Assembly: GCA_020184695.1 (NCBI GenBank)
Contig: JAANOX010000224.1
Location: forward strand, 1 to 64,000
DNA from: Histomonas meleagridis 2922-C6/04-290x
Taxonomy: Eukaryota > Protista > Parabasalia
Length of the DNA: 64,000 bases
Direction of reading: 5' to 3'
Part shown: one piece after another, positions 1-63,884 of the stretch
Layout: the number at the start of each line of letters is the position of its first letter
How positions within the stretch are numbered: position 1 is the first letter of the stretch
The notes under the pieces: generated by a model
The model's input: only the letters and a program-made list of their open reading frames with translations
Database searches by the model: none
What the model was told of the DNA's origin: nothing
Position numbers and translations under genes: made by a program

Positions 1-1563
1 AATATTTACCAAATCCAATTTCATATGATATAACTTCAAACAGTAAACTTTAGTTCCTGCAAATATATCAATCGCATATTTCACACATAACCATTGCCTA
101 TCTGATATCTCCTTACCTCCAATCATAGAATATTATAGAAACAAAGACACAAATGAACTTAATACATTTGGTAAATATAAAATAAGAAGTTAGATAATTT
201 TACAAAAGTCATATCCCACCAGAATTATTCTCTGAATTAATTGATCTCAAAATTACAAATTCTGGATCTTCATTCCGAATATATTTTCAATTTAATCAAA
301 AATTTAGGCTTACAAATACCCTTCCAATTTTCATTACACGAAAACATTAAGTGTAAAACACGTAGTTAAAATCGAACATAATCTGACTATTTATGTACAT
401 CACTGCCGATAGTGAGTAAACTATTCAAAAAGGCAACACCTCGAAAATTGCATTCATTCATGGATGAAATCTTATACAACAGAACAACATTGTGATTTAA
501 AAGGCAGAAACAACGACCAAAGGAAATGAAGATATTACATATTAATTTAAAGGCAGATTTGCATTTTCGAAGACATATCAAAAGTTCGAATACAATGAAA
601 AGTTATTAATGATCCAATATCATTTCCAATGGATTTAGAATTAGCAAAACCTGATGGAAATGGTACTGAAAAATACTCAAATGAGCACTGTATGCTATCA
701 CAATCAGGTCAACAATTAAATATAGAAAGTATAAAACATTTTGTTGCCGACTGCAAAGCTAGAAGTGGTTATTCTTTAGCGAAACAAGAAGTAGCATCTG
801 CCAAAGTCCGAAAGCAATATTCGAAAAGGAGTTAACATGGATGTTATTATGTACTAAACTTGAAGATGAAATTGATTGAAACTATAAATATTTGTTTGTA
901 TCAAAATAATAATTGATAAAATATGAATTTTATGCACACGTATCTCTAAACATTATCGAACACTTTCACTGTAAGGAAATTCCTCATTGTGTACAAACGA
1001 AAATCGCAACAGAGAATAGTGATTGGAGATTGATCATTAGCAATTCATTAAAATGGAAGGAAGCTAAGATAGTATTTGTATGGTAAAAATGGTAGATGCT
1101 AAATCCCTTCAATGGTTTCTTGTGCAAGTGATAGAGTCCTTGTTATTAAACCAGCTCAATACAAATATTGAACAAGAGATTCAACTAAGTTTGCAGATTT
1201 AAACCCCATTAAGCTTATCTCCACCAATAGCAGCATACATTGCATATTCCCACAACAATCAATTACCATGATTGAAAGATGCGCTTGCCTATGATCATGG
1301 TGATGGTACATTAGTTTTATCAGTAAGTGATATTAAAAGCAATTTTTGTTATTAACAGATCTTTCTATTAGTTTCGATATTGATGAAAAATGGCATCCCG
1401 CATGAACTGGGCATTCTGGTGTGACGGCTCAGCGGTGGAGAACATAACCAGTAACTTCAGTTGTATCGTGTATCACAAAAGTGCCAATACTTTGCGGATG
1501 TGACATAAAATCAAATAACTGGGTGAATTATTTTAGGTGAACCTAAATTAAAAATTCAATTTC

Positions 1564-3590
1564 TTAGTTTAGAATTGGGATGTGGAAGGTGATCTTGTTA
1601 CCAAAGTAGCGTTTTCGGAGTTGGATGCCTTGTGGTTGTTCGTTGTCATCTAATTGAACGTCTGTGATGGAGTAATCGCCGAATGTAACTGTTTCTTCAC
1701 CATCGAGCGTAGAAGAGTTCAAGGCTACGTTGCCTCTGATGAGGTCAGCGGCGAAGCAGATAACCTTCTTTGACAACGTTCCAGATCTTGCCCCAGTTCC
1801 ACTTGTTGGTTGATGGTTCTTCAACATCACCGAAGTCCAGCGATTTCCAGTGTGGACTGTAACTTTGACGCCATCTTCGTTTTGGAGAACAATGTTTCTA
1901 ACTTCATCGTTATCATCGACTTGGATATCAATAACCTTGAAGCCGTTGAAGACTGGTTGGCCGTTTTCTTCATCGAATGATTCGTCAATGAGAACGAAGA
2001 GCTTTTGAAGGAAGTTGACGACCTTCTTGATGCTCGTTCCAAAGTTTTCTTCCAGCTGAACTTGTTAGCAACTGGTGCTGAGTTGCTTCCGATAGAAATC
2101 TTAATCTTGATCTTGTTACCAGCTTCGTTTTCGAGCGTGATGCCTTGTGGTGTTTCCTTTTCGTCTAAGTCAACGTCTGTGCTTGAGTATCCACCGAGAA
2201 CTGGTTGTTCTCTCGCCATCCTTAGTTGTGAGTTCGAGGTTTCCTCGATGAGGTCAGCGACGAGCAGATAGCCTTGACTTTAACGTTCCAGATCTTGCTC
2301 CAGTTCCACTTGTTTTCTCCCTTCCATGAATGATTCTGATTCAGAAGTCAACGAGTGTTGTGTCGAGGATGATCTCAACACCTTCTTCGTTTTCAAGAAC
2401 GATCTTTGGTTGTTCAGTTTCTGTGAATTCGAGGTTTGTAACTGTGAATCCATTGAATTTGAATTCTTCACCATCTTCTTCGAAGGATTCGTCAATGAGA
2501 ACGAAGAGCTTTTGAAGGAAGTTGACGACCTTCTTGATGCCGTTCCAAAGTTTCTTCAGCTGAACTTGTGAGACTGGTGCTGAGTTGCTTCCGGATAGAA
2601 ATCTTAATCTTGATCTTGTTACCAGCTTCATTTTCGAGTGTGATGCCTTGTGGTGTCTTCTTCATCTAAATCAACATCTGTGATTAAGTAATCACCGAGA
2701 ACTGGTTGTTCTTCGCCATTCTAAGTTGTGAGTTCGAGGTTTCCCGTCTGATGAGGTCAGCGACGAAGCAGATAACCTCTTGACAACTTTCCCAGATCTA
2801 GCTCCAGTTCCACTTGTATCATCATCTAAAACGACTGTATCGAAACGGTGGAGTGTTGTGTCAAGGATGATTTGTGTCCTTGTCCGTTTTCAAGAACGAT
2901 TTCTTTGGTTTGTTATCTTCTGTTAATTGATGTCAATAACCTTGTAACCGTTGAATGAGAGACCTTCTTCTGTTTCCTGAATGATTCGTCCAATGAGAAC
3001 GAAGAGCTTTTGAAGAGAGTTGACGACTTCTTGATAGCGTTCCCAAAAGTTTCTTCCAGCCGAACTTGTTTGAATAGCAGCATTGTTTGGTGAACCGATT
3101 TCGACGTGGAAGATGGATCTTGTTACACAGTGATTTTTCCGAGTTGATGCCTTGTGGTTGGTCATTGTCACTCCATCTGTGTAACTTCTGTGATGGAGTA
3201 ATCGCCGAATGTAACTGTTTCTTCACCATCGACTGTTGAAAGTTCAAGGCTATTGCCTCTGATGAGATCAGCGACGAAGCAGATAACAACTCTTGGACAA
3301 CGTTCCAGATCTTGCCCTCAGTTCCATTTTGTTTGATGCTGGTTCTTCAACATCACCGAAGTCAGCGATTTCAGTGTGAACAAGAACTTTAACACCATCA
3401 TCGTTTTGGAGAACAATGTTTCTAACTTCATCATTATCATCTACTTGTACGTCAATAACTTTAAATCCATTGAATACTGGTTGGCCGTTTTCTTCATCGA
3501 ATGATTCGTCAATGAGAACGAAGAGCTTTTGAAGGAAGTTAACGACCTTCTTAAGACCGTTCCAAATGCCTTTCCAGTTGATCTTGTTTG
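1564..3590 (-). repeat. Four tandem ~510-nt coding repeats
   Basis: The block tcgtcaatgagaacgaagagcttttgaag recurs at about 1983, 2489, 2990 and 3507; cgttccagatcttg recurs at about 1778, 2284 and 3301. Confidence 0.9.
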
Positions 3591-3671
3591 GAATTGGATC
3601 CTTGAATTGTTTTCAACGCTTCCAATTAAAGCGAGGAAAAAGACAAATAACATAAATGACAATTTTGACAT
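1564..3671 (-). CDS. Secreted repetitive polyprotein (signal peptide + 4 x AB modules, each an amphipathic cationic helix followed by an acidic beta-rich domain); reading frame broken by many 1-nt indels
   Basis: Hydrophobic N-terminus MLFVFFLALIGSVEN. Joining frames of the overlapping ORF fragments gives repeated NK(I/F)(N/S)WKxxWNGxKKVVNFLQKLFVLI and NKWNWGKIWNVVKKVICFAADLIRG motifs. TAA at 1564-1566. C-ending codon bias. The frameshifts may be assembly errors or pseudogenisation. Confidence 0.65.
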
Positions 3672-3851
3672 TTATTTGAGAGGACTCATATTTCACTCAG
3701 AATTTTGAATCATTCAATTTCAAAGTTTTACGAGGCGGTTGAAAATTTGAGCTCACAAAGTTTGAACCCTTTTTTTTGGCACATTGCTTTTCAAAAGTGA
3801 AATTTCACTTGTCTTTTGACGATGACGTTAAAATAGGGTTGAAAAATCCAA

Positions 3852-4413
3852 ATGGAAGTGCAAATCAGTCAAAAACAACTAGAAGATCTTTACCATTGGA
3901 TTGACACGATTCCATTGTCGGGAGGAAGATCTTCCTAGAGTCTGATGCTGTATTGATATGGCTGAAGTAGAGCAATATCCAAATCTTGTTGATCTTTTTA
4001 ATTATGATCAAGGATTAAAAGTTGAGACAAAGGTGTATAATTGGAAAACTTTAAACACACGTGTCTTAAAAAAATTATCATATAATTTATCACCAGAAGT
4101 TATAAATAATCTTGCAAATGCGAAACCTGGTGTAATAGAAAAGGTTCTTTTTGATGTCAGAAATGTTATAAATAATAAAATTGAACAAGACCAAAATCCA
4201 TATGCAGATTTGATTAGTGATAATTCCATAGAAGAAGAAATTGAATCTGCAAAACATGAAACAAATAGAAAGGTTCTTGAAGCAAAAATTAAAGAAGTTG
4301 ATGAACAAAATCAATATATCAAAGAACTTGAAGAAAAAATAAGTAATATTGAAAAATTGATACAGACCAAAGATGAAAAAATTTTTCAATTATCAGATAG
4401 AGCAAAACGATGA
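3852..4413 (+). CDS. SPEF1: SPEF1/CLAMP-like CH-domain flagellar protein; 5' part frameshifted or corrupted
   Basis: ATG at 3852 gives MEVQISQKQLEDLYHWIDTIPLS. ORF 3958-4413 continues AEV..YPNLVDLFNY..KVYNWKTLNTRVLKKL..AKPGVIEKVL and ends in a coiled-coil tail. The two parts are out of frame. Confidence 0.75.
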
Positions 4414-5911: not shown

Positions 5912-6750
5912 AAAAAATCACTCGAAGATAATTCGTTTTCGTTTGTTAATAAAAATTCATCTGATGACATTTGTGTGACTTTCTTTAATGAAAAAGATGA
6001 TGTCGTTGATCGTATAGACATTTGTTCTTGATTTGAAATTTCTGAAAGTGAATCAAATTTCAACTTAGAAGTATATAACATATCAGAGCTATTCATGGAA
6101 CTATCAGAAATAACTTCCATTTGTGATTCTTCGATGAGATCTGGCTTTTGAATTTTTCTGAAAGATTGATTTTTATGTGGTTTGTTTTGATTGTGCTGCT
6201 TTTTCCTTGGTTCTTTTGTGATTTGATGAGGGTTTATTCCTTTGTTTCGAATTGATTTCCATTTTAGAAATATTTCAGAATGTTTTCTTTCAATATGTTT
6301 ATCAAGATATTTGATACTGCTAAAAGATCTGGAACAAATTGGACATTTTTCAATTTGTTTTAATTGGTTCTTTAAAAGATTTTGGGATTTTTGATTATAT
6401 TTTTTAAGTGAATGTATTTTTTGTTTTGCTAAAGAAAGCTCTGATTCAGATGTTGTTAATTTATTTAACAGACGCTTTTGAACATTGCTCATTAAAATTA
6501 ATGAAACCTGGAGAATTCGACAAAGTTTTCGAGATAACGGATGTGATAAAATCGATGAATCAGAATTAGAGAGATCTAGTCCAACAAAGTTTGTTAAAAA
6601 TGGTTGGATTCTGGTTATATCACCAGATTTTAAAATCAAATCTAGATCAATTGAAGATACAACAGACCAATCAATTAGCTCATCAAAGTTTGTGGTAGGA
6701 GTCTGACCTATTGAGACTGGTATAATTGGTAGAAGAACAGATCCCCACAT
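5890..6750 (-). CDS. DZIP1-like protein (Dzip-like N domain + C2H2 zinc finger)
   Basis: IDWSVVSSIDLDLILKSGDITRIQPFL..KLCRILQ, then a coiled coil and CPICSRSFSSIKYLDKHIERKH. Confidence 0.75.
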   Translation of the reverse strand: MWGSVLLPIIPVSIGQTPTTNFDELIDWSVVSSIDLDLILKSGDITRIQPFLTNFVGLDLSNSDSSILSHPLSRKLCRILQVSLILMSNVQKRLLNKLTTSESELSLAKQKIHSLKKYNQKSQNLLKNQLKQIEKCPICSRSFSSIKYLDKHIERKHSEIFLKWKSIRNKGINPHQITKEPRKKQHNQNKPHKNQSFRKIQKPDLIEESQMEVISDSSMNSSDMLYTSKLKFDSLSEISNQEQMSIRSTTSSFSLKKVTQMSSDEFLLTNENELSSSDFFYSSDST

Positions 6751-7259
6751 AAAAAGGTGAATTGGATTAACGTATTTAAACGTTCGGTAATAAAAAAAAG
6801 TTAATCACTGAACTGCATTTTTTACTTTAATAATATTGCTTCTTTATCATGCTTTTAAATTTGATGGCACATACTTAATCTTGACTTGTTACCAAAAAAT
6901 ATTTATCCAGTGTCCCTTAATTAACACTTTTCTGATTTATACAGCATGTATTATCAGAAAAATTAGGCAAATGCAAAATTAAGAAAGATATTTGGTTCCT
7001 TCTGAATAAAATTTATAAATAAAAAATAATTGAGAATTTTGCTATGGCAATAAGACTAAAATTCAAAAGAAACATATATAAAATTGATAGTGAATTTATC
7101 TAATCTGTTAAACAATTTTTATACATCGAATGAAACGATAAAATAATATGCAAAGTATAAACTTTTTAACTTAGTCAGATTGCATATTTTAACATCACAT
7201 GTTTTTTACGAGCATTCAAAAGGAAAGATTGAATGGTTGTAAAATAACATTTTGATAGG

Positions 7260-8657
7260 CCTAAACCATCGTCATAAAATGAATTCAAGACAGAAGCATT
7301 TGAAACATTCAGCCCAAGTACTCTTACAATAACTTTTTTAGAAGATTTGGAACAAAGCTCTAATTATAAAGATCAAATAAAACATATTATAATTGAGAAC
7401 GGTGTTGAAAATATTACATTTAATGATTTTAACTTTTTTACCTCTTTAATAACAATAGCAATTGGTAATTCAGTACGTTCAATTGAATATAGCCCTTTTG
7501 TGAGGCTTGTAAACCTTGAAATGATTAATGTATCTGAAGAAAACTTATTATTCAAGTGATACTAATGGAATTCTTTATGAAAAACATTTTAAATCATTGT
7601 TTTTTGTCCATTTGCAATGCCAATTAACTCTTTTATCATTCCAAATTCGGTAAATTCAATTGGTGATTCTGCATTTTATTCATGTAAAACATTAACAATT
7701 ATTACAATTACATGTTCAGTTACGTTAATTGGAACTGATGTATTTTGTCAATGAGATAATTTAGAAATACTCATCATTAACGAAGGTGTAAAAGCAATTG
7801 GAAATTTTTCATTTTACTATTGTTCATCATTAGCAAATATTACGGTTCCAAATTCAGTTTCTTCAATTGGAATGTCTGCATTTCGTGAATGCGATAAATT
7901 AAAAGCAATTATCATTGGTCAAGGTGTAACAGAAATTCAAAATTCTGAAATCTTGTTCATCATTAACAAATATTGCAATTCCGGATTCAGTAACTTCAAT
8001 TGGAGTTGAAGCATTTCGTGGATGCAATGATTTGGAAACAGTTATCATTGATGCATATAATGGAACAACATTTGGAGGACTTAATGTGTCAAAGGATCAT
8101 CAGTTGGAAAATGCGAACAATATCTCTGGCCGACGCACGCATTCGCGAAAACAAATACATTCACTAAGTCAAATGCATTCACTAAATCAAATGCATTCAC
8201 TGCATCATATATTTTGAGTGGAACATTTTCATATACATTTACTTTATATATAACTCAATCGTTAAAATTTCATTCATTTATATCGAATACAATCTTTAAT
8301 ACGATAATTAATTCATTTTCCACATATATTTATACTGAGTTTCTTTTTTATGGATACACAGTTCATAGATACTCCACATATTATTTGTATTATTCAAATT
8401 TCTTTACTATTCCACAAATTGATTCACAAATAAATAATAAATTACCAATGAATTTGTTAATTGGTATAATTTGTTGTTCAGTTATTGTGATTCTTTTAAT
8501 TATTGGAATTATTATTTTTGTTATTCATAAAAGTAAAAAATTAAATACAAAAGAAATGTCATGTGAATCATCAGATAATTTAAATCAAAGTGAACAATTA
8601 AATAAAAATTTCGATAAATATATTGGAAATGATAATGATCAATGGATAAAAGAATAA
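7260..8657 (+). pseudogene. BspA-type leucine-rich-repeat surface protein, disrupted
   Basis: Fragments IPNSVNSIGDSAFYSC, VPNSVSSIGMSAFREC and IPDSVTSIGVEAFRGC, an FTKSNAFT stalk repeat and a C-terminal TM helix (LLIGIICCSVIVILLIIGIIIFVI), with several stops and frameshifts. Confidence 0.75.
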
Positions 8658-22203: not shown

Positions 22204-22857
22204 TAGAAATTATGTTTGAAAATAAAAATTTAATTCTGAAGTTGTTTAGTGTGAAATTAAATGAAAATTTGTATAAAATTTTATACAAAGGCTAAAAATT
22301 ATTAGGAATAATTTTCATGAATATATAACTAATTTGTAATTTTATCATTTTTGGTTTAAGAAGAATTGGAAATACTTTTATAATGGGAGTTATAAAAAAA
22401 TCAACTCAATGATTTGAACTGAATCAGGGAAAATAGAAATAGAAAAATTACTTTTCAAAAAAGAAATTAATATTACACAAAAAATATTTATAATTTTATA
22501 TTAGTTTTAAGAAGTTATTTAAAACGGTATTAATGGCTGGTTATTAAAAATAAAAAAGATATTAATTTATTCATTTTAACAGTTGTTAATTTTGAATATT
22601 AATAAAAACACTATAATTACTAATATAAAGTTTATAATAGGCTATTTTGAGTATGTGTTTGCACAAAAATAATGTTGATAAGATTTAGATAAAACATGCT
22701 TTTATTTCGTTGATTTCGTATTTCGATAAACTAAGCTCCTCTTGGTCAAAAAATCAATAAATTATTTATATTTACATGAATTCCTGTTTGCTTCGGCTTT
22801 TAATGAAAAGTGACATGTTTACAAAAAAGTTCTTATTTCAAAAATTTGCATTTCGAA

Positions 22858-25800
22858 ATGCAACTTTTACGGAAACTCGAGCAAATCATATTCAACATAA
22901 ATGAAAAAAATTTTTTACTATCAGTTGATAATACAATACATTGTTTTGACAAAAATTTCCCATACACATTCAATGCTTCCGTATGTTTTTTAGTTTTTTC
23001 TGCTTTTTCTTCACAAAACAATTTAAGTGATGTATACTTAAATTATTTACATTTAATTCAAACAAAGGAAGAAGAAATAAATAATAACATCCCAAAAATC
23101 TTTGATATTTTTTCGTTTCAAATCAATACTATCTTCCAAACTAAAACACAAGAAATATGTTATCTTATTGAAAAAATGATCGTACAAAAATTAGCTCGGC
23201 CAAATATTGATAAAATCACTACAAAATATTTTGCACATTATAAATCAGAAAGATTAAGTAAACTTAAACAAAGTTTTGATTTATTTGAAGATACTTTTTT
23301 AAATAATTATGAAGAACTATCAAAGAATGATTGGGAACTTCATAAAAAGTTAATTAAAGAAGGAGTTAATCCGAATGAAATTGCAAAAATAATTCGAAAT
23401 GATGAAATAGAAAAACTTCAAGAAATATCATCACAATCAAACTTTTATTTTGATCAAACAATTGAACCATCACTTTATGAAAGATGTTCTTTTATTAATG
23501 AAAAGAATGTTACATTAATTGATTATGCAGCATTTTTTGGATCAATTAAATGTTTTAAATATTTACTTATGAATGGTGGAAATTTATCAAATACAGGTAA
23601 ATATGCAATTGCTGGTGGAAATGAAGAAATTATTCATTTATGTGAACAAAATCATTCATCATTTAAAGATGCATATGTAACCGCAATTGAATTTCATCGA
23701 AATGATATCTTTAAATATATTTATGAGAATAAATTCGAAAAACATGATAAAAATTATGTGGATTTGGGATGCATTTGTATTAAAAATGGGAATTATGAGA
23801 TTTTAACATTTTTAGAAAAAGAAGGAATGAAAGTTAATCAAAATATTATTGATGAATCAGCAAGAATTGGAAACTTATATCTTTTTAAATATTTTTTACA
23901 AAATGAGCAAATTCCAATCGATACTTTATTTTTTTCTATAGAATCAAATAACCATGAACTTGTCAAATTTATTATTGATCAAGAAGCAATTGATATTAAT
24001 GCTTATGCTATTTATTCGTTTTATTTAAGATTTACTTTAATAAAACAATGTTTCAAAATAATATTTGGAAATTATTTAAGTTATTTGAAACAGCATTTAT
24101 GAAAGCATCTTATTATGGTCATATAGAAATAGTCAAATTGCTTTTAAAACAGAAAGGAATTGATGTTAATGATGAAGATATTTATTTGTTTTATTTAATA
24201 TTTATTTTAATAATTTTGTATTTCAAAATAATATTTGGAAATTATTTAACTTATTTAAAACAGCACTTATAAAAGCATCTGAAAATGGTCATACAGAAAC
24301 AGTTAAATTACTTCTTGAACAAGAAGGAATTGATATTAATGCTAAAAATATTTATTTATTTTATATAGAATTTATTTTAATAATTTAATATTTCAAAATA
24401 ATATTTGGAAATTATATAAAATATTTTGGACAGCACTTATGATTGCATCTCAAAATGGTCATACAGAAATAGTTAAATTACTTCTTGAACAAGAAGGAAT
24501 TAATATTAATGAGAAAAAAAATATTTATTTGTTTTATTTAATATTTATTTTAATAATTTGATATTTCAAAATAATATTTGGAAATTATTTTAATTATTTA
24601 ATGCTGCACTTATTTTAGCATCTAAAAGTGGCCATATAGAAATAGTTAAATTACTTCTTGAACAAAAAGGAATTGATATTAATGCTAAAAACATTTATTT
24701 GTTTTATTTGGATTTTATTTTAATAATTTTCTATTTCAAAATAATATTTGGGAATCATTTAATTTATTTGATACAGCAATTATTTTAGCATCTAAATATG
24801 ACCATATAGAAATAATTAAATTACTTCTTGAACAAGAAGGAATTGATATTAATGCTAAAGATAAAATTTATTTATTTTAATTTATATTTATTTTAATAAT
24901 TTGATTTTTCAAAATAATATTTGGAAATTATTTAAATTATTTAATACAGCACTTATATATTCATCTAAAAATGGTCATACAGAAATAGTTAAATTACTTC
25001 TTGAACAAGAAGGAATTGATATTAATGTTAAAGATATTTATTTGTCTCATTTAAAATTTATTTTAATAATTTGATATTTCAAAATAATATTTGGAAATTA
25101 TTTAAATTATTTAAAACAGCACTTATATTAGCATCTGAAAATGGTAACAACGAAATCGTTAAATTACTTCTTGATCAAGAAGGAATCGATGTTAATGCTA
25201 AAGATATATATTTATTTTTTTAAAAATTTATCATAATTAATTGAATTTTATAAAAAATATTTGGGAAATATTCCAATAATTTAATACAGCACTTATTTTG
25301 GTGGCTAAAAATAGAATAGTTAAAAATGAAATCATCAAATTATTACTTCAACATAATCAAATCGATATCAACGCCAAAGAAGATGATTAACCTCATTATT
25401 CAAAATTTATTTTGATAATTTTATGTTTAAAAACAAAATTTGAAATTTATTTTTATTTTTTGAAACCGCACTTATATACGCATCTAGATATGGCAAGACA
25501 GAAATAGTTAAAATACTTCTTGAACATGAAGGAAATGACCTCAATGCTAAAGATAATGTCTATTAATTTTCTCTATTATTTGTTGAAATATTATGATATT
25601 TAATAATAATATTTGGAATTTTTGCATGTCTTTTAGAACAGCACTTATATGGGCATCTTTTAATGATCATATAGATATAGTTAAATTACTTCTCCAACAA
25701 AAAGGAATTGATATTAATGCAAAGAGTGATTTTTTCTTCTATCTGGAGTTTATTTATGAAATTTTCTATATCAAATTAATATTTGGGATTTATACTAATT

Positions 25801-26043
25801 ATTTCAAACAGCACTTATGTTGGCAACTCGTAGTGAACGAGTAGATGTAGTTAAATTACTTCTTGAACAAAAAGCAATCGATATTAATCTTAAAAATACT
25901 TATTAATCTCTTTTGAAGTTAATTTTAATAACATGATTTTTCTATTTTAAAATTGGTATTTATTGGAATTATTCGAAACAGCACTCGATATAGCTGTTGA
26001 AAATGGTCAAGATGAAATTGTAAAATTGCTTCAACAAAAATAA
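22858..26043 (+). CDS. DUF3447-type ankyrin protein, locus A (~789 aa after removing 48 17-nt spacers)
   Basis: N-terminal IIRNDEIEKLQE..LIDYAAFFGSIKCFKYL domain, then 12 arrays each followed by a stop-free in-frame TAL.. segment (11 of 30-33 codons, last 21 codons). TAA at 26041-26043. Confidence 0.85.
24010..25977 (+). repeat. 12 ankyrin linker arrays, each exactly 80 nt = 4 x (17-nt spacer + 1 codon)
   Basis: Arrays start at 24010, 24180, 24350, 24523, 24693, 24866, 25036, 25206, 25385, 25558, 25728 and 25898; each was counted at 80 nt. Confidence 0.92.
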
Positions 26044-36752: not shown

Positions 36753-38198
36753 ATGGGAATAGTTCCAAGCCAAAACATTGAAGAAAATTTCAAACAAGGC
36801 ACTGGAATAAAAGAAAGTCAGGATATAATTCCATTCAAAGAAAGTATTCGAAACTTACAACTGCTTGAAAAGTATATTTTTTCATTGAATGAAAACAATA
36901 TTCAAGAAACATCTGAATCAACGATGAAATTATTCAATAAAAGTTTTCCATATACATGGCACCTTGTAATTTGTCGATTGATATTCGCTTCTTGTATATC
37001 ACAAGATAAAACATTAACATATTTTTAGATTATTTAAAACTAATTGATAAAAAAGAAGAAGAAATGTCTGATCAAAGTTTTGACAGAATTCTTAATGTAT
37101 TAACACAATTCATTCTTACATTAACGTCACGCGAATCTGATTACATTCTAATGAAAATGTATGAACAAAACATAGTTAATCAAAGCATTATACAAAGAAA
37201 AAAAATCAATTATTTTGCACATTTCTTATCTGATAAAACAATCAATATAATAAAATACAAAAAAAATAATATTATTTTTAGTGCAGTTCTACAACGTGTT
37301 AAAGAAAATTATTTGGAATTGCATAAGCAATTAATTAAAGAAGGAGTTAATTCAAATGAAATCTCAAAAATAATTCGAAATGATGAAATAGAAAAACTTC
37401 AAGAAATATCATCGCAAGCAAATTTTAATTTTAATCAAAAAGTTGAACCATCACTTTATGAAAGATGTTCTTTTATTAATCAAGAAAATGTTTCGTTAAT
37501 TGATTATGCAGCATTTTTTGGATGAGTTAAATGTTTTAAATATTTACTTATGAATGGTTCTAAAATAGATAACACTGGTAAATATGCAATTGCAGGTGGA
37601 AATCTTGAAATTATTCATTTATGTCAGCAAAGTTGTGCAACATTTAAAGATACATATGAAACAACAATTCAATTTCATCAAAATGATGCTTTTAATTATC
37701 TCTATGAAAACAAAATTGAAGAAATTAATAATTTAACTTATTTAGGAATTAGATGTATTAAATATGATAATTATGAAATCTTTTCATTTTTGGAAAATGA
37801 GGGAATGGAAATAGATATGATCATTATTAACGAAACAATAAGAATTGGAAACATATTCTTTGCTAATTATTTTCTTGAAGGAAAAAATTATCCAAAAAAT
37901 AGTTTTTTTTTTAGTTTGAATTCAAGAAATGTCGAATTTATACGATATTTAATTGAGAAAAAGGATTACTTCTTGAACAAAAGGGAATTAATGTTAATGC
38001 TAAGGATAATTATTTATTTTATTTAGTATTGATTTTAATAATTTTATATTACAAAATAATATTTGGAAATTATTTAAATTATTTAAAACAGCACTTATTA
38101 AAGCAAGTGAAAACGGTCATACAGAAATTGTTAAGTTGCTTCTTGAACAAGAAGGAACTAATGATGACAAGAAAAGTGAAAATAGTACTGAAGAATAA
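36753..38198 (+). pseudogene. DUF3447-type ankyrin gene, locus B, disrupted; retains one 80-nt linker array (38008-38087)
   Basis: T-run frameshift near 37025, TGA at 37523 where paralogs have Ser (TCA/TCG), and a frameshifting internal deletion near 37965. The final repeat decodes as KD-SYGK-TALIKASENGH and ends at TAA 38196-38198. Confidence 0.8.
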
Positions 38199-39087
38199 AA
38201 ACAAAATTTGATGATAAAGTTTTTGAGGGAAATTTGAACATTTTAAAACAAATTTGATAATTATAGTATAAATTATAAATATAGATATTTATCCAAAAAT
38301 AGGTAGATTATATACTGTTTAGATTTGACAACATTCACCCTTTAAAATTTTAATTAAGATAAAAACTATTTGTATAACTAACATTACAGACACAACTAAT
38401 AAGTCAATTCCAAGAACTAAAGTAACTTTGGCTGCAGAAGAACAATCTGGATCATTAATGATATGTCGCATTTAGGGCTGACAGAAAAGCTTATCAACAC
38501 ACGCAAGCAACACGCATTTCGGCAATTTATAAAGCGCAAAAAAAAAATCTTGGAGTACCCACACTGTGACTTCCACAGCAAACCGATAGAACTTTTTGAT
38601 ATAAGCTATATACAATGCATTGTATTCAAAAAGTTGAGAACGCCGTTTATCCAAGAACGATAAACGATAGAGCTTTTTGGGCTTGTTGATTCACTGATGT
38701 GCATGCACGTTTATGATTCAATTAAAAACGATCGTCGTTTCGATGACATGTTTTCTCGTCAAAAGCGACTTTTTCACACCAAAAACAACGTCACTATAAA
38801 TATATCAACAATGAATCCACGTATCATCTCCATCATGGCAGCAAATTTGCTTTGACATTAGCTTCATAAATTTTAAAACATATGAAAGCTGGATAATTTT
38901 TCTTTTGAATATTTTGAATATAGTTCAACTTACATTGAATAAATTGTAAATCTGTAAAAAATTAAATAAAGTTTAGATTTTAAAGTGTCGCTAATACAGC
39001 ACTTTTTGTCTATAGAAAAGTGTCTATGTATTGAACAAATCCAATTGTCCATGTAAACTATTTAAAAATCGAATCTCACTTTTCGCA

Positions 39088-54126: not shown

Positions 54127-54783
54127 AGAATCAAAATGTTTGCTAAGAAATGTTTAATGTTAATAAAAATAGTATTGTTTTAATAATAAATTTGTACGTA
54201 TGTTCTTTTGAGATAATGTTTTTAAAATATAAAAGCATTGAATAATAATGTGCTCGAAATGTTTCTTAAAGAAGCTTTAGAGTGTTTTCATCTTTTTAAG
54301 TTTGATTAGATCATAAACACTTCTTGAACATTTTATTTTGCTGATACTTGTTTTAACGTTTTACAAACAAATCAAAAATTTTAATAATGTCTGAAAATGA
54401 ATATTTGTATATCATATATATGTTAACATATTATTAAATGAAATATATAATATTAGGCGCTGGAATGCCAAAAAATTAGAAATCTTAAATACCAAGAATT
54501 CTGTACATAGTTGATGTAATATTTATTGACTTCCTATTTTTTTTTTATCAATTTTACAATATCCTTAAAATTGTTTTCAGATGTATACATAAATATTTTT
54601 AATAATTTCTAAATATTATTTTGAAATATCAAATTATTAAAACAAATATAAAATTAAAGGTAAAAATTTTTCATAATTTTAAAAACAATTGGTGGTATGT
54701 TATAATGTTTTCTGTTCGTTCATAGAATAATTAAAAACAATTTTTATTAAAAACAATAAATAGAACCATGAACTAGCCTTAAG

Positions 54784-59461: not shown

Positions 59462-59661
59462 TTGAACGTATCGGATTTTTTGATTTCGTAAATCATGCAA
59501 ATAAAAAATTTGCCTATTCAATTGTGTTTCAATATAAATAATCTTGCCCAAAATATTCTATGATAATATAAAATGACATATACGATACAATATAAATTTG
59601 TTTCTGAAAATTATGAATATTATGACGAGATAGATTGAATAATGGATATCGTTGCATTCAT
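59462..59661 (+). repeat. Dispersed non-coding element, copy 2 (upstream of ankyrin locus C)
   Basis: Homologous to 36350-36612 with an internal deletion. Confidence 0.8.
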
Positions 59662-59962
59662 CATCAATCATTTGTTGGTATGTTTTAAAATGTGATGTTT
59701 TATATAACTGAACAAAAAATACGTGCAATTATGACATAAAAATAAATTTATGAAAATAAATAGATAATATTGTATATTAAAATATATCAAGTTGACATTT
59801 GTGGATATCGATATTACTTGATTATCGAACATTTGCATTAGATCAATAAATGTTGTTTATTCACCAGATATAATCATTAATTCAATAAAAATATAACGAG
59901 AGATTACCTGTAAAATTTTCTGAGGTACCACGGCAAAAACGGTCGCCCATACATTATTTTAA

Positions 59963-62900
59963 GTGGGGGGAAATCAAAGTCAAGCGATTATCAAATACAA
60001 TGAAAACCTTCAAATATTGCAAGCTATTGAGAGAATTATTTTCGATTTAAATGAGGAAAATATTGATCAATCAGTCGAATCTTCTTTTCAATACTTTTCT
60101 CAAAAATTTCCAATTTCATTCCTTCATATTATTAGCAGAATTATTTATTCATATTTTGTTTCAAAAGGATTTGAAAAATTGTGTATCAAATATTTACAGA
60201 AAGCAGAAATAAAATCAAATAATACCTTAATTAATGTTGTTACTCAATTTTTATTATCAATTAATAACGAAGAATCAAATTATCTTCTTGAAAAAATGAT
60301 TGAAAGCAAATTAATAGAACCAAAAATTATTCAAAATAAAAATAAACCTTTTTATATACATTATGTTTCAGAAGAAGAATTCATAAAACTGCAATCTCAA
60401 AGGCTTATATTCAAAAATGAAAATAATTTCAAAGATCTTTCTGAAAATTTTGAACTTCATAAGAAATATGTTAAGAATGGGCACAATCCAAATAAAATTG
60501 CAACAATAATTCGTAATGATGAAGTCGAAAAACTTCAAGAAATATCATCACAAACAAATTTTAATTTTAATCAAATAATTGAACCATCACTTTATGAAAG
60601 ACATTCATTTATTAACAAACCAAATGTTACATTCATTGATTATGCAGCATTTTTTTCTTCGGTTAAATGTTTTAAATATTTACTTATGAATGGAGCAAAT
60701 GTAATAAACACAGGTAAATATGCAGTTGCAGGTGGAAATGAAGAAATCATTCATTTATGTGAACAAAATCATTCGACATTTGAAGATGATTATGAAACAG
60801 CAATTATGTTTCATCGAAATAATATCTTTAAATATATTTATGAAAATAAAATTAATCCTGATAATAATTTAGAAGAATTAGGGAAAGAATGTATTTTACA
60901 TGATAATTTTAATCTTCTTTCATTTTTAAAAGAAGAAGGAATGAATATCAATAAGATTCATATCATTAATTCTATTAAAACAGGAAATATTTTTATTTTT
61001 TTTATATTTCCTCGGAAATAATAAAATTTCACTAGATTTTTTAGAGATTTCAGAGATTTCTATTAAGGAAGAATTTCTTGACTACCTTATTAAACATAAA
61101 TATATTAATTTAAAGAGAAGTGTTTGAAAATTTTATTGAAATTTTATTAAAACGATTTGATATTTTAAAATATGATTTAAATTTTTATTATAAAATTTAA
61201 TACAGCATTTCATATAGCAGTTAGAAATAATAATATAGAAATAGTAAAATTCCTTTTAGATAAAGGAATTGATGTTAATGCAATAAATATTCATTTGAAT
61301 TTTTTGAAATATGTTTTAATAATTTGGAATATGTTTTAATAATTTGAAACAGCACTTTATATAGCAGCTAAAAATAATAATATAGAAATAGTAAAATTAC
61401 TTTTAGATAAAGGAATTGATGTTAATGCAAAAACTATTCATTTGACTGATTTAAAATATGTTTTAATAATTTTATGTATGTTTTAATAATTTGTAATACG
61501 TTTTAATAATTTGTAATACGTTTTAATAATTTGTAATACGTTTTAATAATTTGGAATATTTTTTAATAATTTAAAATATGTTTTAATAATTTTGGATATG
61601 TTTTAATAATTTAGAATATGTTTTAATAATTTGAAACAGCACTTCATATAGCAGTTAAAAATAATAATATAGAAATAGTAAAATTACTTTTAGATAAAGG
61701 AATTGATGTTAATGCAAAAACTATTCATTTGAATAATTTGGAATATGTTATAATAATTTTATATATGTTTTAATAATTTGAAACAGCACTTCATATAGCA
61801 GTTAAAAATAATAATATAGAAATAGTAAAATTACTTTTAGAACAAAAAGGAATTGATGTTAATGCAAAAGATATTCATTTGAATAATTTGGAATATGTTT
61901 TAATAATTTGAAATATGTTTTAATAATTTGAAACAGCACTTCATATAGCAGTTAAAAATAATAATATAGAAATAGTAAAATTACTTTTAGACAAAGAAAT
62001 TGATGTTAATGCAAAAATTATTCATTTGAATAATTTAAAATATGTTTTAATAATTTTGGATATGTTTTAATAATTTGAAATATGTTTTAATAATTTGTAA
62101 TACATTTTAATAATTTGAAATTTGTTTTAATAATTTTATATATATTTTAATAATTTGGAATATTTTTTAATAATTTAGAATATGTTTTAATAATTTGATA
62201 TATGTTTTAATAATTTTATATATGTTTTAATAATCTTATATATGTTTTAATAATTTGGAATATGTTTTAATATTTTTGGATATGTTTTAATGATTTGTAA
62301 TATGTTTTAATAATTTGGAATATGTTTTAATATTTTTGGATATGTTTTAATAATTTAAAATATGTTTTAATAATTTAAAATATGTTTTAATATTTTTATA
62401 TGTGTTTTAATAATTTAAAATATGTTTTAATAATTTAGAATATGTTTTAATAATTTGAAATATGTTTTAATAATTTGAAACAGCACTTCATATAGCAGTT
62501 AGAAATAATAATATAGGAATAGTAAAATTACTTTTAGATAAAGGAATTGATGTTAATGCAAAACTATTCATTTGAATAATTTTGGATATGTTATAATAAT
62601 TTTATATATGTTTTAATAATTTGAAACAGCACTTCATATAGCAGTTAAAAATAATAATATAGAAATAGTAAAATTACTTTTAGATAAAGAAGGAATTGAT
62701 GTTAATACAAAAGATATTCATTTGAATAATTTGAAATATATTTTAATTATTTTGGATATGTTTTAATAATTTTATATATGTTTTAATAATTTGAAACAGC
62801 ACTTCATATAGCAGTTAAAAATAATAATATAGAAATAGTAAAATTACTTTTAGAACAAAAAGGAATTGATGTTAATGCAAAAGATATTCATTTGAATAAT

Positions 62901-63184
62901 TTGGAATATGTTATAATAATTTTATATATGTTTTAATAATTTGAAACAGCACTTCATATAGCAGTTAAAAATAATAATATAGAAATAGTAAAATTACTTT
63001 TAGATAAAGAAGGAATTGATGTTAATACAAAAGATATTCATTTGAATAATTTGAAATATATTTTAATTATTTTGGATATGTTTTAATAATTTGGAATACG
63101 TTTTAATAATATTTTACTGCGACTCAAATTGCACATCAAACAGGTTACACAGAAATAGGAAATTTACTTCATGAAAAAAAATAA
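59963..63184 (+). CDS. DUF3447-type ankyrin protein, locus C, with ten 20-nt-unit linker arrays
   Basis: DUF3447-like N-terminus (begins GTG-GGG-GGA, no ATG). One extra T in the run 60996-61003 and one missing A near 62563 (possible homopolymer errors). Nine near-identical TA(L/F).IA..NNNI.IVK segments, then a terminal TATQIAHQTG..EKK-TAA at 63182-63184. Confidence 0.7.
61122..63115 (+). repeat. Ten arrays of 20-nt units (consensus ATATGTTTTAATAATTT-NNN) of 4,3,10,3,3,23,3,4,3,4 units between ankyrin segments
   Basis: Arrays: 61122-61201, 61289-61348, 61436-61635, 61723-61782, 61873-61932, 62020-62479, 62566-62625, 62716-62795, 62886-62945, 63036-63115. Confidence 0.93.
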
Positions 63185-63319
63185 AAATATAAAATTAAAA
63201 ATAAAGTACAAACAAAAATTTTAATTCAGATTCCTCTTCTACATAAAATCTTCATTCTCAATAAGAAATGGAAATAAAGCACATATTGCTAATAACATTA
63301 AAATCAACTTGAAGATCAA

Positions 63320-63592
63320 ATGTTCGCAAGAAACACTAGAAAGAAAAGTAAAACAAAAGTTGATATAAACATACAAACAACCATATTTCCAGAGCATAGC
63401 GGTCTTCGGAATTTGAAAAAAAAGAATATCACATTAAGGGTCTACTCAAATCGTAAAATTATGTACGTTAATTTTTCTGAGGTTTACTTGAAAAAATCTA
63501 AGATTAAAAAAATCATAGAGAATTTGTACGAAAATGCCTCCTCTCAAATTGAGGAATCTTTATGCCAAGAACTTGACAAGAGTCAGCTTTGA
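63320..63592 (+). CDS. Small hypothetical ORF, 90 aa
   Basis: ATG-started basic ORF with no recognisable motif. Confidence 0.25.
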   Translation: MFARNTRKKSKTKVDINIQTTIFPEHSGLRNLKKKNITLRVYSNRKIMYVNFSEVYLKKSKIKKIIENLYENASSQIEESLCQELDKSQL

Positions 63593-63812: not shown

Positions 63813-63884
63813 TGGAAATATGGGGGATTGAACCCCAGGCCTCCACTATGCTAAAGTGGCGCTCTCCCACTGAGCTATACTCCC
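63813..63884 (-). tRNA. tRNA-Ala (anticodon AGC)
   Basis: GGGAGTA TAGCTCAGTGGGAGAGC G CCACT-TTAGCAT-AGTGG AGGCC TGGGG-TTCAATC-CCCCA TATTTCC A: full cloverleaf with the G3:U70 Ala identity pair. Confidence 0.97.

Follow-up and report, generated by a model that had tools for sequence, protein, structure and literature searches.

The 64,000-nucleotide (nt) stretch of contig JAANOX010000224.1 from the parabasalid Histomonas meleagridis analysed here (the window) contains an ankyrin-repeat gene, gene 1 (59963-63184, plus strand), in which the residues of the hairpin loops are probably encoded by single codons. These codons would lie between 17-nt spacers that are transcribed and then removed, and in gene 1 the units of spacer plus codon (17+3 nt) would have spread as frame-neutral arrays. 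RNA contigs of this family lack the spacers and retain the triplets in short arrays. H. meleagridis has a very large family of DUF3447-ankyrin genes that includes gene 1; two further members, gene 2 (22810-26043) and gene 3 (37064-38200), lie on the same strand of the window.

Gene 1 opens with a 352-codon open reading frame (ORF) at 59963-61021, which contains DUF3447 and degenerate ankyrin repeats (PF11929, E=4e-7). The ORF is closed by a stop that results from a frame change of 1 nt within a T-run. A continuation in the next frame (60998-61121) is open up to the first array and has its homologue in the corresponding part of gene 2. Between 61122 and 63115, nine near-identical ankyrin exons of 86-90 nt alternate with, and are flanked by, ten arrays of 80, 60, 200, 60, 60, 460, 60, 80, 60 and 80 nt. 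A terminal capping half-repeat (63116-63184), with the stop codon at 63182-63184, closes the gene. All 60 array units consist of a 17-nt T-rich spacer and 3 variable nt, with no remainder, the spacer being ATTCATTTGAATAATTT at the opening of each array and ATATGTTTTAATAATTT in later units. The 20-nt period was recovered independently by Tandem Repeats Finder (22.8 copies at 62025-62480, 86% matches). The units therefore have the form of a minisatellite, that is, they stand head to tail in copy numbers that differ among arrays (3, 4, 10 or 23 units). The exons encode T-A-L-H-I-A-V-K-N-N-N-I-E-I-V-K-L-L-L...D-V-N-A-K-x, 29-30 consensus residues. Measured against the definition of ankyrin repeats (33 residues, with T-A-L-H...L-L...G-x-D-x-N helices and a D-x-x-G-x-T hairpin), the exons carry the helix consensus, and Pfam assigns both Ank and DUF3447 in the N-terminal ORFs.

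Along the gene, array 1 (61122-61201) has four divergent units that decode as KDKN. It is followed by ankyrin exon 1 (61202-61288, 87 nt), array 2 (61289-61348; three units, EGE), exon 2 (61349-61435, 87 nt), array 3 (61436-61635; ten units, KYVVVGKWRE), exon 3 (61636-61722, 87 nt) and array 4 (61723-61782; three units, GYE). Exon 4 (61783-61872, 90 nt), which is identical to exon 8, precedes array 5 (61873-61932; three units, GEE) and exon 5 (61933-62019, 87 nt). The longest array, array 6 (62020-62479), has 23 units with the decode KWEVEYGRDYYGWVGWKKYKREE and no stop triplet. Exon 6 (62480-62565) then leads to array 7 (62566-62625; three units, WYE), exon 7 (62626-62715, 90 nt, identical to exon 9), array 8 (62716-62795; four units, EWYE), exon 8 (62796-62885, 90 nt), array 9 (62886-62945; three units, GYE, identical to array 4), exon 9 (62946-63035, 90 nt) and array 10 (63036-63115; four units, EWGF). 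The loop residues encoded in this way are rich in E, K, G, Y and W.

Stop codons are missing from the triplets. None occurs among the 60 triplets of gene 1, against 11.4 expected from their own position-wise composition (P = 3e-6), and none among the 108 triplets of genes 1 and 2 together, against about 14 expected (P = 4e-7). The T-initial triplets of the two genes are only TAT, TGG, TTT, TCT and TGT, never TAA, TAG or TGA, and the repertoire of gene 1 comprises ten types (GAA, GGA, TAT, AAA, TGG, GTA, AGA, GAT, AAT and TTT). Over the 47 non-first units of gene 1, the consensus is departed from at 43% of triplet sites and 3.1% of spacer sites (Fisher p = 2e-36, odds ratio 24), a 14-fold difference. 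The triplet sites have entropies of 1.2-1.5 bits and the spacer sites of 0.0-1.1 bits, 12 of the 17 spacer sites being below 0.5 bits. A recent duplication of 230 nt has left two copies (62566-62795 and 62886-63115), between which 0 of 90 exon sites, 2 of 119 spacer sites and 8 of 21 triplet sites have changed, with three triplets replaced as a whole. Judged from these patterns, the triplet variation looks more like a swapping of ready-made units between identical spacers than like point hypermutation, and it would also fit selection against stops and against spacer changes.

An earlier note on this stretch, made from the sequence alone, had described ten arrays that are exact multiples of 20 nt and had listed their decoded strings; the array lengths, the parse and all ten strings, including KWEVEYGRDYYGWVGWKKYKREE, were reproduced exactly. 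Its observation that the 60 triplets include no stop was confirmed, and its suggestion that loops vary in length agrees with arrays that would encode 3 to 23 codons. The spacers that it called homogenised are indeed close to consensus in most of the gene, but the four spacers of array 1 are divergent and not homogenised. Likewise, the triplets that it called hypervariable do vary far more than the spacers; however, they appear to do so by unit exchange and within ten triplet types only.

We compared RNA with DNA by aligning Logan contigs, assembled from three RNA runs and a single DNA run, on positions 59500-63400. The intergenic interval upstream of gene 1 (59500-59890) has a depth of 0-2 in RNA and of 570-4400 in DNA; therefore, the RNA libraries carry little DNA. 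Over the 200-nt array (61436-61635) the depth in RNA collapses to about 0.6-0.9% of that in the flanking exon bins, compared with 25-30% in DNA. Over the 460-nt array (62020-62479) it is 2-7% of that in flanking exon-dominated bins in RNA, compared with 37-57% in DNA. Overall, the RNA depth is 20 to 170 times lower over the arrays. Since the RNA libraries carry so little DNA, the residual RNA signal over the arrays fits unprocessed precursors, which are present in the RNA at a low level.

The RNA contigs connect ankyrin exons directly, with the arrays skipped, 5 to 21 letters in between and the frame always kept. When the ambiguous bases are assigned, the stretches at these joints consist of whole array-type codons (GGA, GAA, AGA, TAT and similar), and they decode, for example, as N-G-E, N-G-E-E-E, K-R-R-E-E-E, R-R-R-E-R-E-E and Y-E-D-E-I-I-R-E. 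Among the array-skipping joints of this decoded-codon type that were listed, none had a contig in the single DNA run compared. One joint (61435 to 62476, letters GGATA), found in all three RNA runs, reads AAAACT-GGA-TAT-GAA-ACAGCA. This is the exact predicted product of array 4 (61723-61782) plus its flanking exons, and it is absent both from the contigs of the DNA run and from the DNA of the 64-kilobase window. The cut positions of the middle spacer of this GYE array are unambiguous, the spacer being removed as AT...TT, and for the spacers of the array the contigs show both precise exon joining and absence from the mature RNA. Elsewhere in gene 1, the breaks in the RNA alignments coincide with spacer/codon borders. 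Contigs from the N-terminal side end at 61121, the base preceding array 1, so that the break lies between 61121 and 61122. At the other end, a contig with 0 differences to 63113-63244 opens exactly at the TTT triplet of array 10, between 63112 and 63113. The earlier note had proposed that each unit is a module of one amino acid, and this is supported by the GGA-TAT-GAA decode, which the contigs of three RNA runs carry and those of the DNA run lack.

Gene 2 is the cleanest example of the 17+3 system in the window. Its 12 inserts are all exactly 80 nt long, that is, 4x(17+3), with non-homogenised spacers, although its repeats are only about 80% identical; the exons measure 90, 93 or 99 nt. Pairwise identity amounts to 0.80 for the spacers, 0.79 for the exons and 0.76 for third codon positions. 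The inserts decode as KNGE, NCGK, RNGW, NDGN, GSGD, YDGN, KDGK, KEGN, KYEE, IDGR, GSGQ and EDGE, which match the ankyrin hairpin consensus x-N/D-G-x, with Gly in the third position in 11 of 12 and encoded by GGA, GGG or GGT. A share of 0.39-0.43 of the sampled 31-mers of gene 2 was present in four RNA runs, compared with 0.78-0.81 in the two best DNA runs; the 31-mers that avoid the inserts make up 0.366, which is the share expected if the RNA lacks the inserts.

The same architecture is found in relatives of these genes. In gene 3, whose N-terminal part is broken by an in-frame stop, there is a single 80-nt insert (38008-38087) that decodes as SYGK; like those of gene 2, its decoded codons give the ankyrin hairpin consensus x-N/D-G-x. 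A gapless alignment of 15 insert sequences takes in gene 3 and a relative on a gut-metagenome scaffold, whose 4x(17+3) inserts have quite different spacers and decode as HFGN, HEGR and YDGK. Chicken-gut metagenomes contain 5-7% of the words of gene 2, and scans of JGI metagenomes with two patterns gave no match. When the window was scanned with a spacer profile, 20-nt phasing was found only in genes 1, 2 and 3 and in a minus-strand relic at about 54560-54680 that consists of two or three spacer-like units. Another family member of H. meleagridis, on contig WSYJ01000186.1 of the other assembly (6270-7480), is broken by an insertion that looks transposase-bearing. Its annotated protein finishes in junk sequence at the insertion, after which decayed ankyrin repeats follow with the 80-nt inserts still there. 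In Tritrichomonas foetus, one homologue is uninterrupted. Downstream of TRFO_35377, on MLAK01001067.1 (4640-5075), three more ankyrin repeats in shifting frames lie past the annotated stop. AT-rich inserts of about 69, 31 and 30 nt separate these repeats, again at the hairpin position; an 18-nt GT...AG intron and four remaining codons (Y-N-N-K) would together account for the 30-nt one. T. foetus may have a related kind of interruption of a different size.

The 112 spacers of the three genes are 17 nt long without exception and contain 93% A+T (58% T, 35% A). Their consensus, ATTTATTTnnATTATTT, is weak and comprises a 5' A-T-T-T-A and a 3' A-T-T-T. The first two nucleotides are AT in 86 spacers, AA in 10, GT in 7, TT in 6, GA in 2 and AC in 1; the last two are TT in 100 and AT, CT, TC, TG, AC or TA in the others. 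None of the 112 has GT..AG ends, and the spacers thus lack the pair of terminal dinucleotides of U2-type introns (GT or GC at the 5' end with AG at the 3' end). Neither the 5' GTAYGT nor the 3' (A/T)CTAAC...AG motif of parabasalid introns (Trichomonas types A and B; PMC12316389) is present in the consensus. Many spacers start with AT, as do U12-type AT-AC introns, but an AC end occurs in 1 of 112 and ATATCC in none.

IRE1/RtcB splicing (XBP1, HAC1 and bZIP60, with introns of 20-26 nt) and the processing of bulge-helix-bulge introns of the tRNA (transfer RNA) type also remove tiny, non-spliceosomal introns, by means of an endonuclease and a ligase. However, they need conserved stem-loops or bulges at both cut sites, and these were not found here: RNAalifold on the 15 aligned inserts with their flanks predicted 0 pairs, with an energy of 0. 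We favour a fixed-length excision reaction that is not standard GT-AG spliceosomal splicing and is independent of a conserved RNA fold. Since T-initial codons follow the terminal T-run of the spacer without any sequence boundary, the length seems to be measured from the 5' side and not set by recognition of the 3' junction.

Three other parses of the inserts were rejected. A single GT-AG intron per insert fails because several inserts have no GT at all and the phases misfit. A register in which the removed piece starts at the GT of ATATGT, with TAT constant, is contradicted by the RNA junction GGA-TAT-GAA. Removal of whole arrays is contradicted by the same junction and by an alignment break that lies at 63113 instead of 63116.

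The mechanism that we propose would work as follows. The hairpin residues between consecutive ankyrin repeats would be encoded codon by codon, with a 17-nt spacer before each codon; the spacers would be transcribed and then cut from the RNA, and with each triplet retained one amino acid would result per 20-nt unit. In gene 1, the unit type with the spacer ATATGTTTTAATAATTT would have multiplied, as a minisatellite of 20-nt period, to give the arrays of 3 to 23 units. With only 3 nt of each unit left after processing, changes in unit number and exchanges of units would be neutral to the frame. Identical spacers would permit slippage and out-of-register exchange, by which whole cassettes could be gained, lost or swapped, while selection would weed out stop triplets and spacer mutations. 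We infer that the 10-unit and 23-unit arrays are also decoded in full and translated. As for the machinery, our guess would be a dedicated endonuclease and ligase, or a highly unorthodox (recursive) spliceosomal reaction, that would recognise the motif A/G-T-T-T on the 5' side and count off 17 nt. It is possible, albeit doubtful, that a new RNA-processing reaction of Histomonas acts in this way as an evolvable loop generator, which by slippage, unit exchange and perhaps alternative retention of units per transcript yields hairpins that differ widely in length and sequence with the frame intact, and diversifies a binding surface across a family with thousands of repeats.

Several observations weigh against this interpretation. 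The RNA evidence consists of contigs assembled with k=31 in a family whose near-identical pieces number in the thousands; 27,560 DNA contigs aligned on the 3.9 kilobases of the gene 1 region. Most of the listed RNA joints derive from paralogues and are not provably those of gene 1, and over the N-terminal part 3-6% of sites are different between the RNA contigs and the window. Among the contigs listed, none carries the 10-unit or the 23-unit array in decoded form. Contigs also drop rare variants, so that a rare spacer-free form of the DNA remains compatible with the data. The Gly position of the ankyrin hairpin is kept in just 2 of the 10 arrays of gene 1, and the spacer termini are variable (5' AT in 86 and 3' TT in 100 of 112). 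We know of no enzyme that accounts for fixed-length recognition of 17 nt. Finally, the assembled gene 1 has two 1-nt frame lesions. For the N-terminal ORF to run into array 1, one T has to be dropped from the T-run near 60990-60997. One T is left out at 60996 in most of the RNA contig depth and in 43% of the DNA contig depth, which suggests a residual nanopore assembly error in a repetitive family. Exon 6 (62480-62565) is 86 nt long instead of the 87 nt of intact length, its A-run being one base short, and therefore the assembly loses the frame after the 460-nt array. These lesions may be homopolymer errors of the nanopore-based assembly or real decay.

If they are real, gene 1 could be a decaying copy, in which case the 17+3 system of the family would be genuine but the units here would be inert minisatellite and the long arrays would never become protein. 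We think this unlikely; however, the frame lesions at 60996 (T-run) and in the 86-nt exon, together with loops that lack the canonical Gly position, leave it appreciable weight. It would also agree with the N-terminal RNA contigs, which are 94-97% identical and thus come from paralogues, and with the existence of decayed family copies such as gene 3, with its in-frame stop, and the transposon-interrupted copy on WSYJ01000186.1. A dead gene, on the other hand, does not readily explain the lack of stops among 60 triplets where 11 are expected, spacers held at 3% divergence while the triplets vary, or an RNA contig that is identical to 63113-63244 and starts at a codon border, and the extra T at 60996, missing as it is from so many contigs, may be an assembly error. 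An improbable variant is that transcripts keep subsets of the triplets, as in the combinatorial reading of the earlier note, or lose long arrays as a whole, so that each molecule would carry its own loops and a repertoire would arise. Loop lengths of 3 to 8 codons in RNA contigs of the family would be indirect support, but these contigs are explicable as ordinary products of different paralogues, and the only array with an identifiable product (GYE) keeps its three triplets in order.

The other two explanations place the loss of the spacers outside RNA processing. Excision from the DNA of a subpopulation, of the kind known for eliminated sequences in ciliates, with only the spacer-free DNA being transcribed, would suit elements that are short, AT-rich and of fixed size, and assembled contigs do drop rare DNA forms. 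Yet the listed joints of the RNA runs have no contigs in the one DNA run compared, and the RNA, which otherwise shows no intergenic DNA signal, contains the arrays at low depth, as precursors would; we regard such excision as very improbable. Still less do we believe that the spacers stay in the mRNA, with the ribosome bypassing (hopping over) them or with repeated frameshifting over the ankyrin segments. T4 gene 60 and the mitochondrial byps of Magnusiomyces are the precedents for such bypassing in translation, and they resemble our case in that short, frame-breaking, stop-containing inserts within ORFs do not appear in the protein. Those inserts remain in the mRNA, whereas here the RNA contigs lack the spacers and join the triplets, and both the RNA depth and the share of 31-mers fall over the inserts. 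We therefore retain removal of the spacers from RNA as the preferred explanation.

Each of the nearest known systems differs from the 17+3 design in at least one defining feature. Full-text searches of a literature library and term searches within papers gave no account of 17-nt spacers or of exons of a single codon in parabasalids. Ultrashort spliceosomal introns, of 15-16 nt in Stentor, 18-21 nt in the Bigelowiella nucleomorph and 23-25 nt in Trichomonas vaginalis (type B; PMC12316389), are likewise very short, AT-rich, near-fixed in length and removed from RNA, and they also occur in an intron-poor parabasalid relative. However, those are GT-AG introns with a branch-site motif and exons of normal size, whereas here there is neither a GT..AG pair nor ACTAAC...AG, and the exons are 3 nt long in up to 23 tandem units. 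The 3-nt microexons of animals and plants (PMC8831610, PMC7821500) resemble the triplets in that a single codon forms its own exon. They are isolated, though, with long canonical introns around them, and are not known to stand in tandem arrays at 17-nt separation. Coding minisatellites and contingency repeats share with gene 1 that tandem copy number alters protein length; a 20-nt unit would normally shift the frame, and it would be neutral here only through the removal of 17 nt in RNA. Finally, the ankyrin hairpin is also where variation lies in designed ankyrin repeat proteins (DARPins), in which it forms the binding surface; the comparison of the loops of gene 1 with these and with CDR3, made in the earlier note, is an analogy only.

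Genes 1 and 2 appear to be unannotated, and most of the family seems to be absent from the published proteome. Between 45341 and 66441 of the JAANOX010000224.1 record, no gene is called over gene 1. With the N-terminal ORFs of these two genes as queries, database searches gave no 100% match, only paralogues with at most 67% identity, and the ORFs of these paralogues stop at the first spacer; the best named matches to the family are H. meleagridis proteins. The same searches found no RNA-derived protein with decoded loops. In the H. meleagridis genome paper (PMC8529796), introns are described as scarce, with at most one per gene, and the G+C content is given as 28.7%, compared with 29.2% in the window; a term search found no mention of ankyrin in its main text.

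Elsewhere in the window, an ABC transporter has an H. meleagridis paralogue at 75% identity. A tandem repeat of 138 nt (46 residues) and of BspA-like leucine-rich type lies at 7690-8201, upstream of a HEAT-repeat ORF of 2321 codons. The only Rfam match in the window is a tRNA-Ala (AGC) gene on the minus strand (63813-63884), about 630 nt downstream of gene 1.

If removal at the RNA level holds in raw reads, this would be a gene-interruption system without precedent. Its intervening sequences would be among the shortest reported (17 nt, compared with 15-16 nt in Stentor), non-GT-AG and of strictly fixed length, and its exons would be single codons, up to 23 of them consecutively. Such a system would challenge ideas of exon recognition and would point to new machinery for excision and ligation. 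The 17+3 design would account for a large ankyrin family that is missing or truncated in the published H. meleagridis annotation (PMC8529796). For the family itself, a 20-nt repeat that normally breaks the frame would have become a frame-neutral means to lengthen and reshuffle a protein loop.

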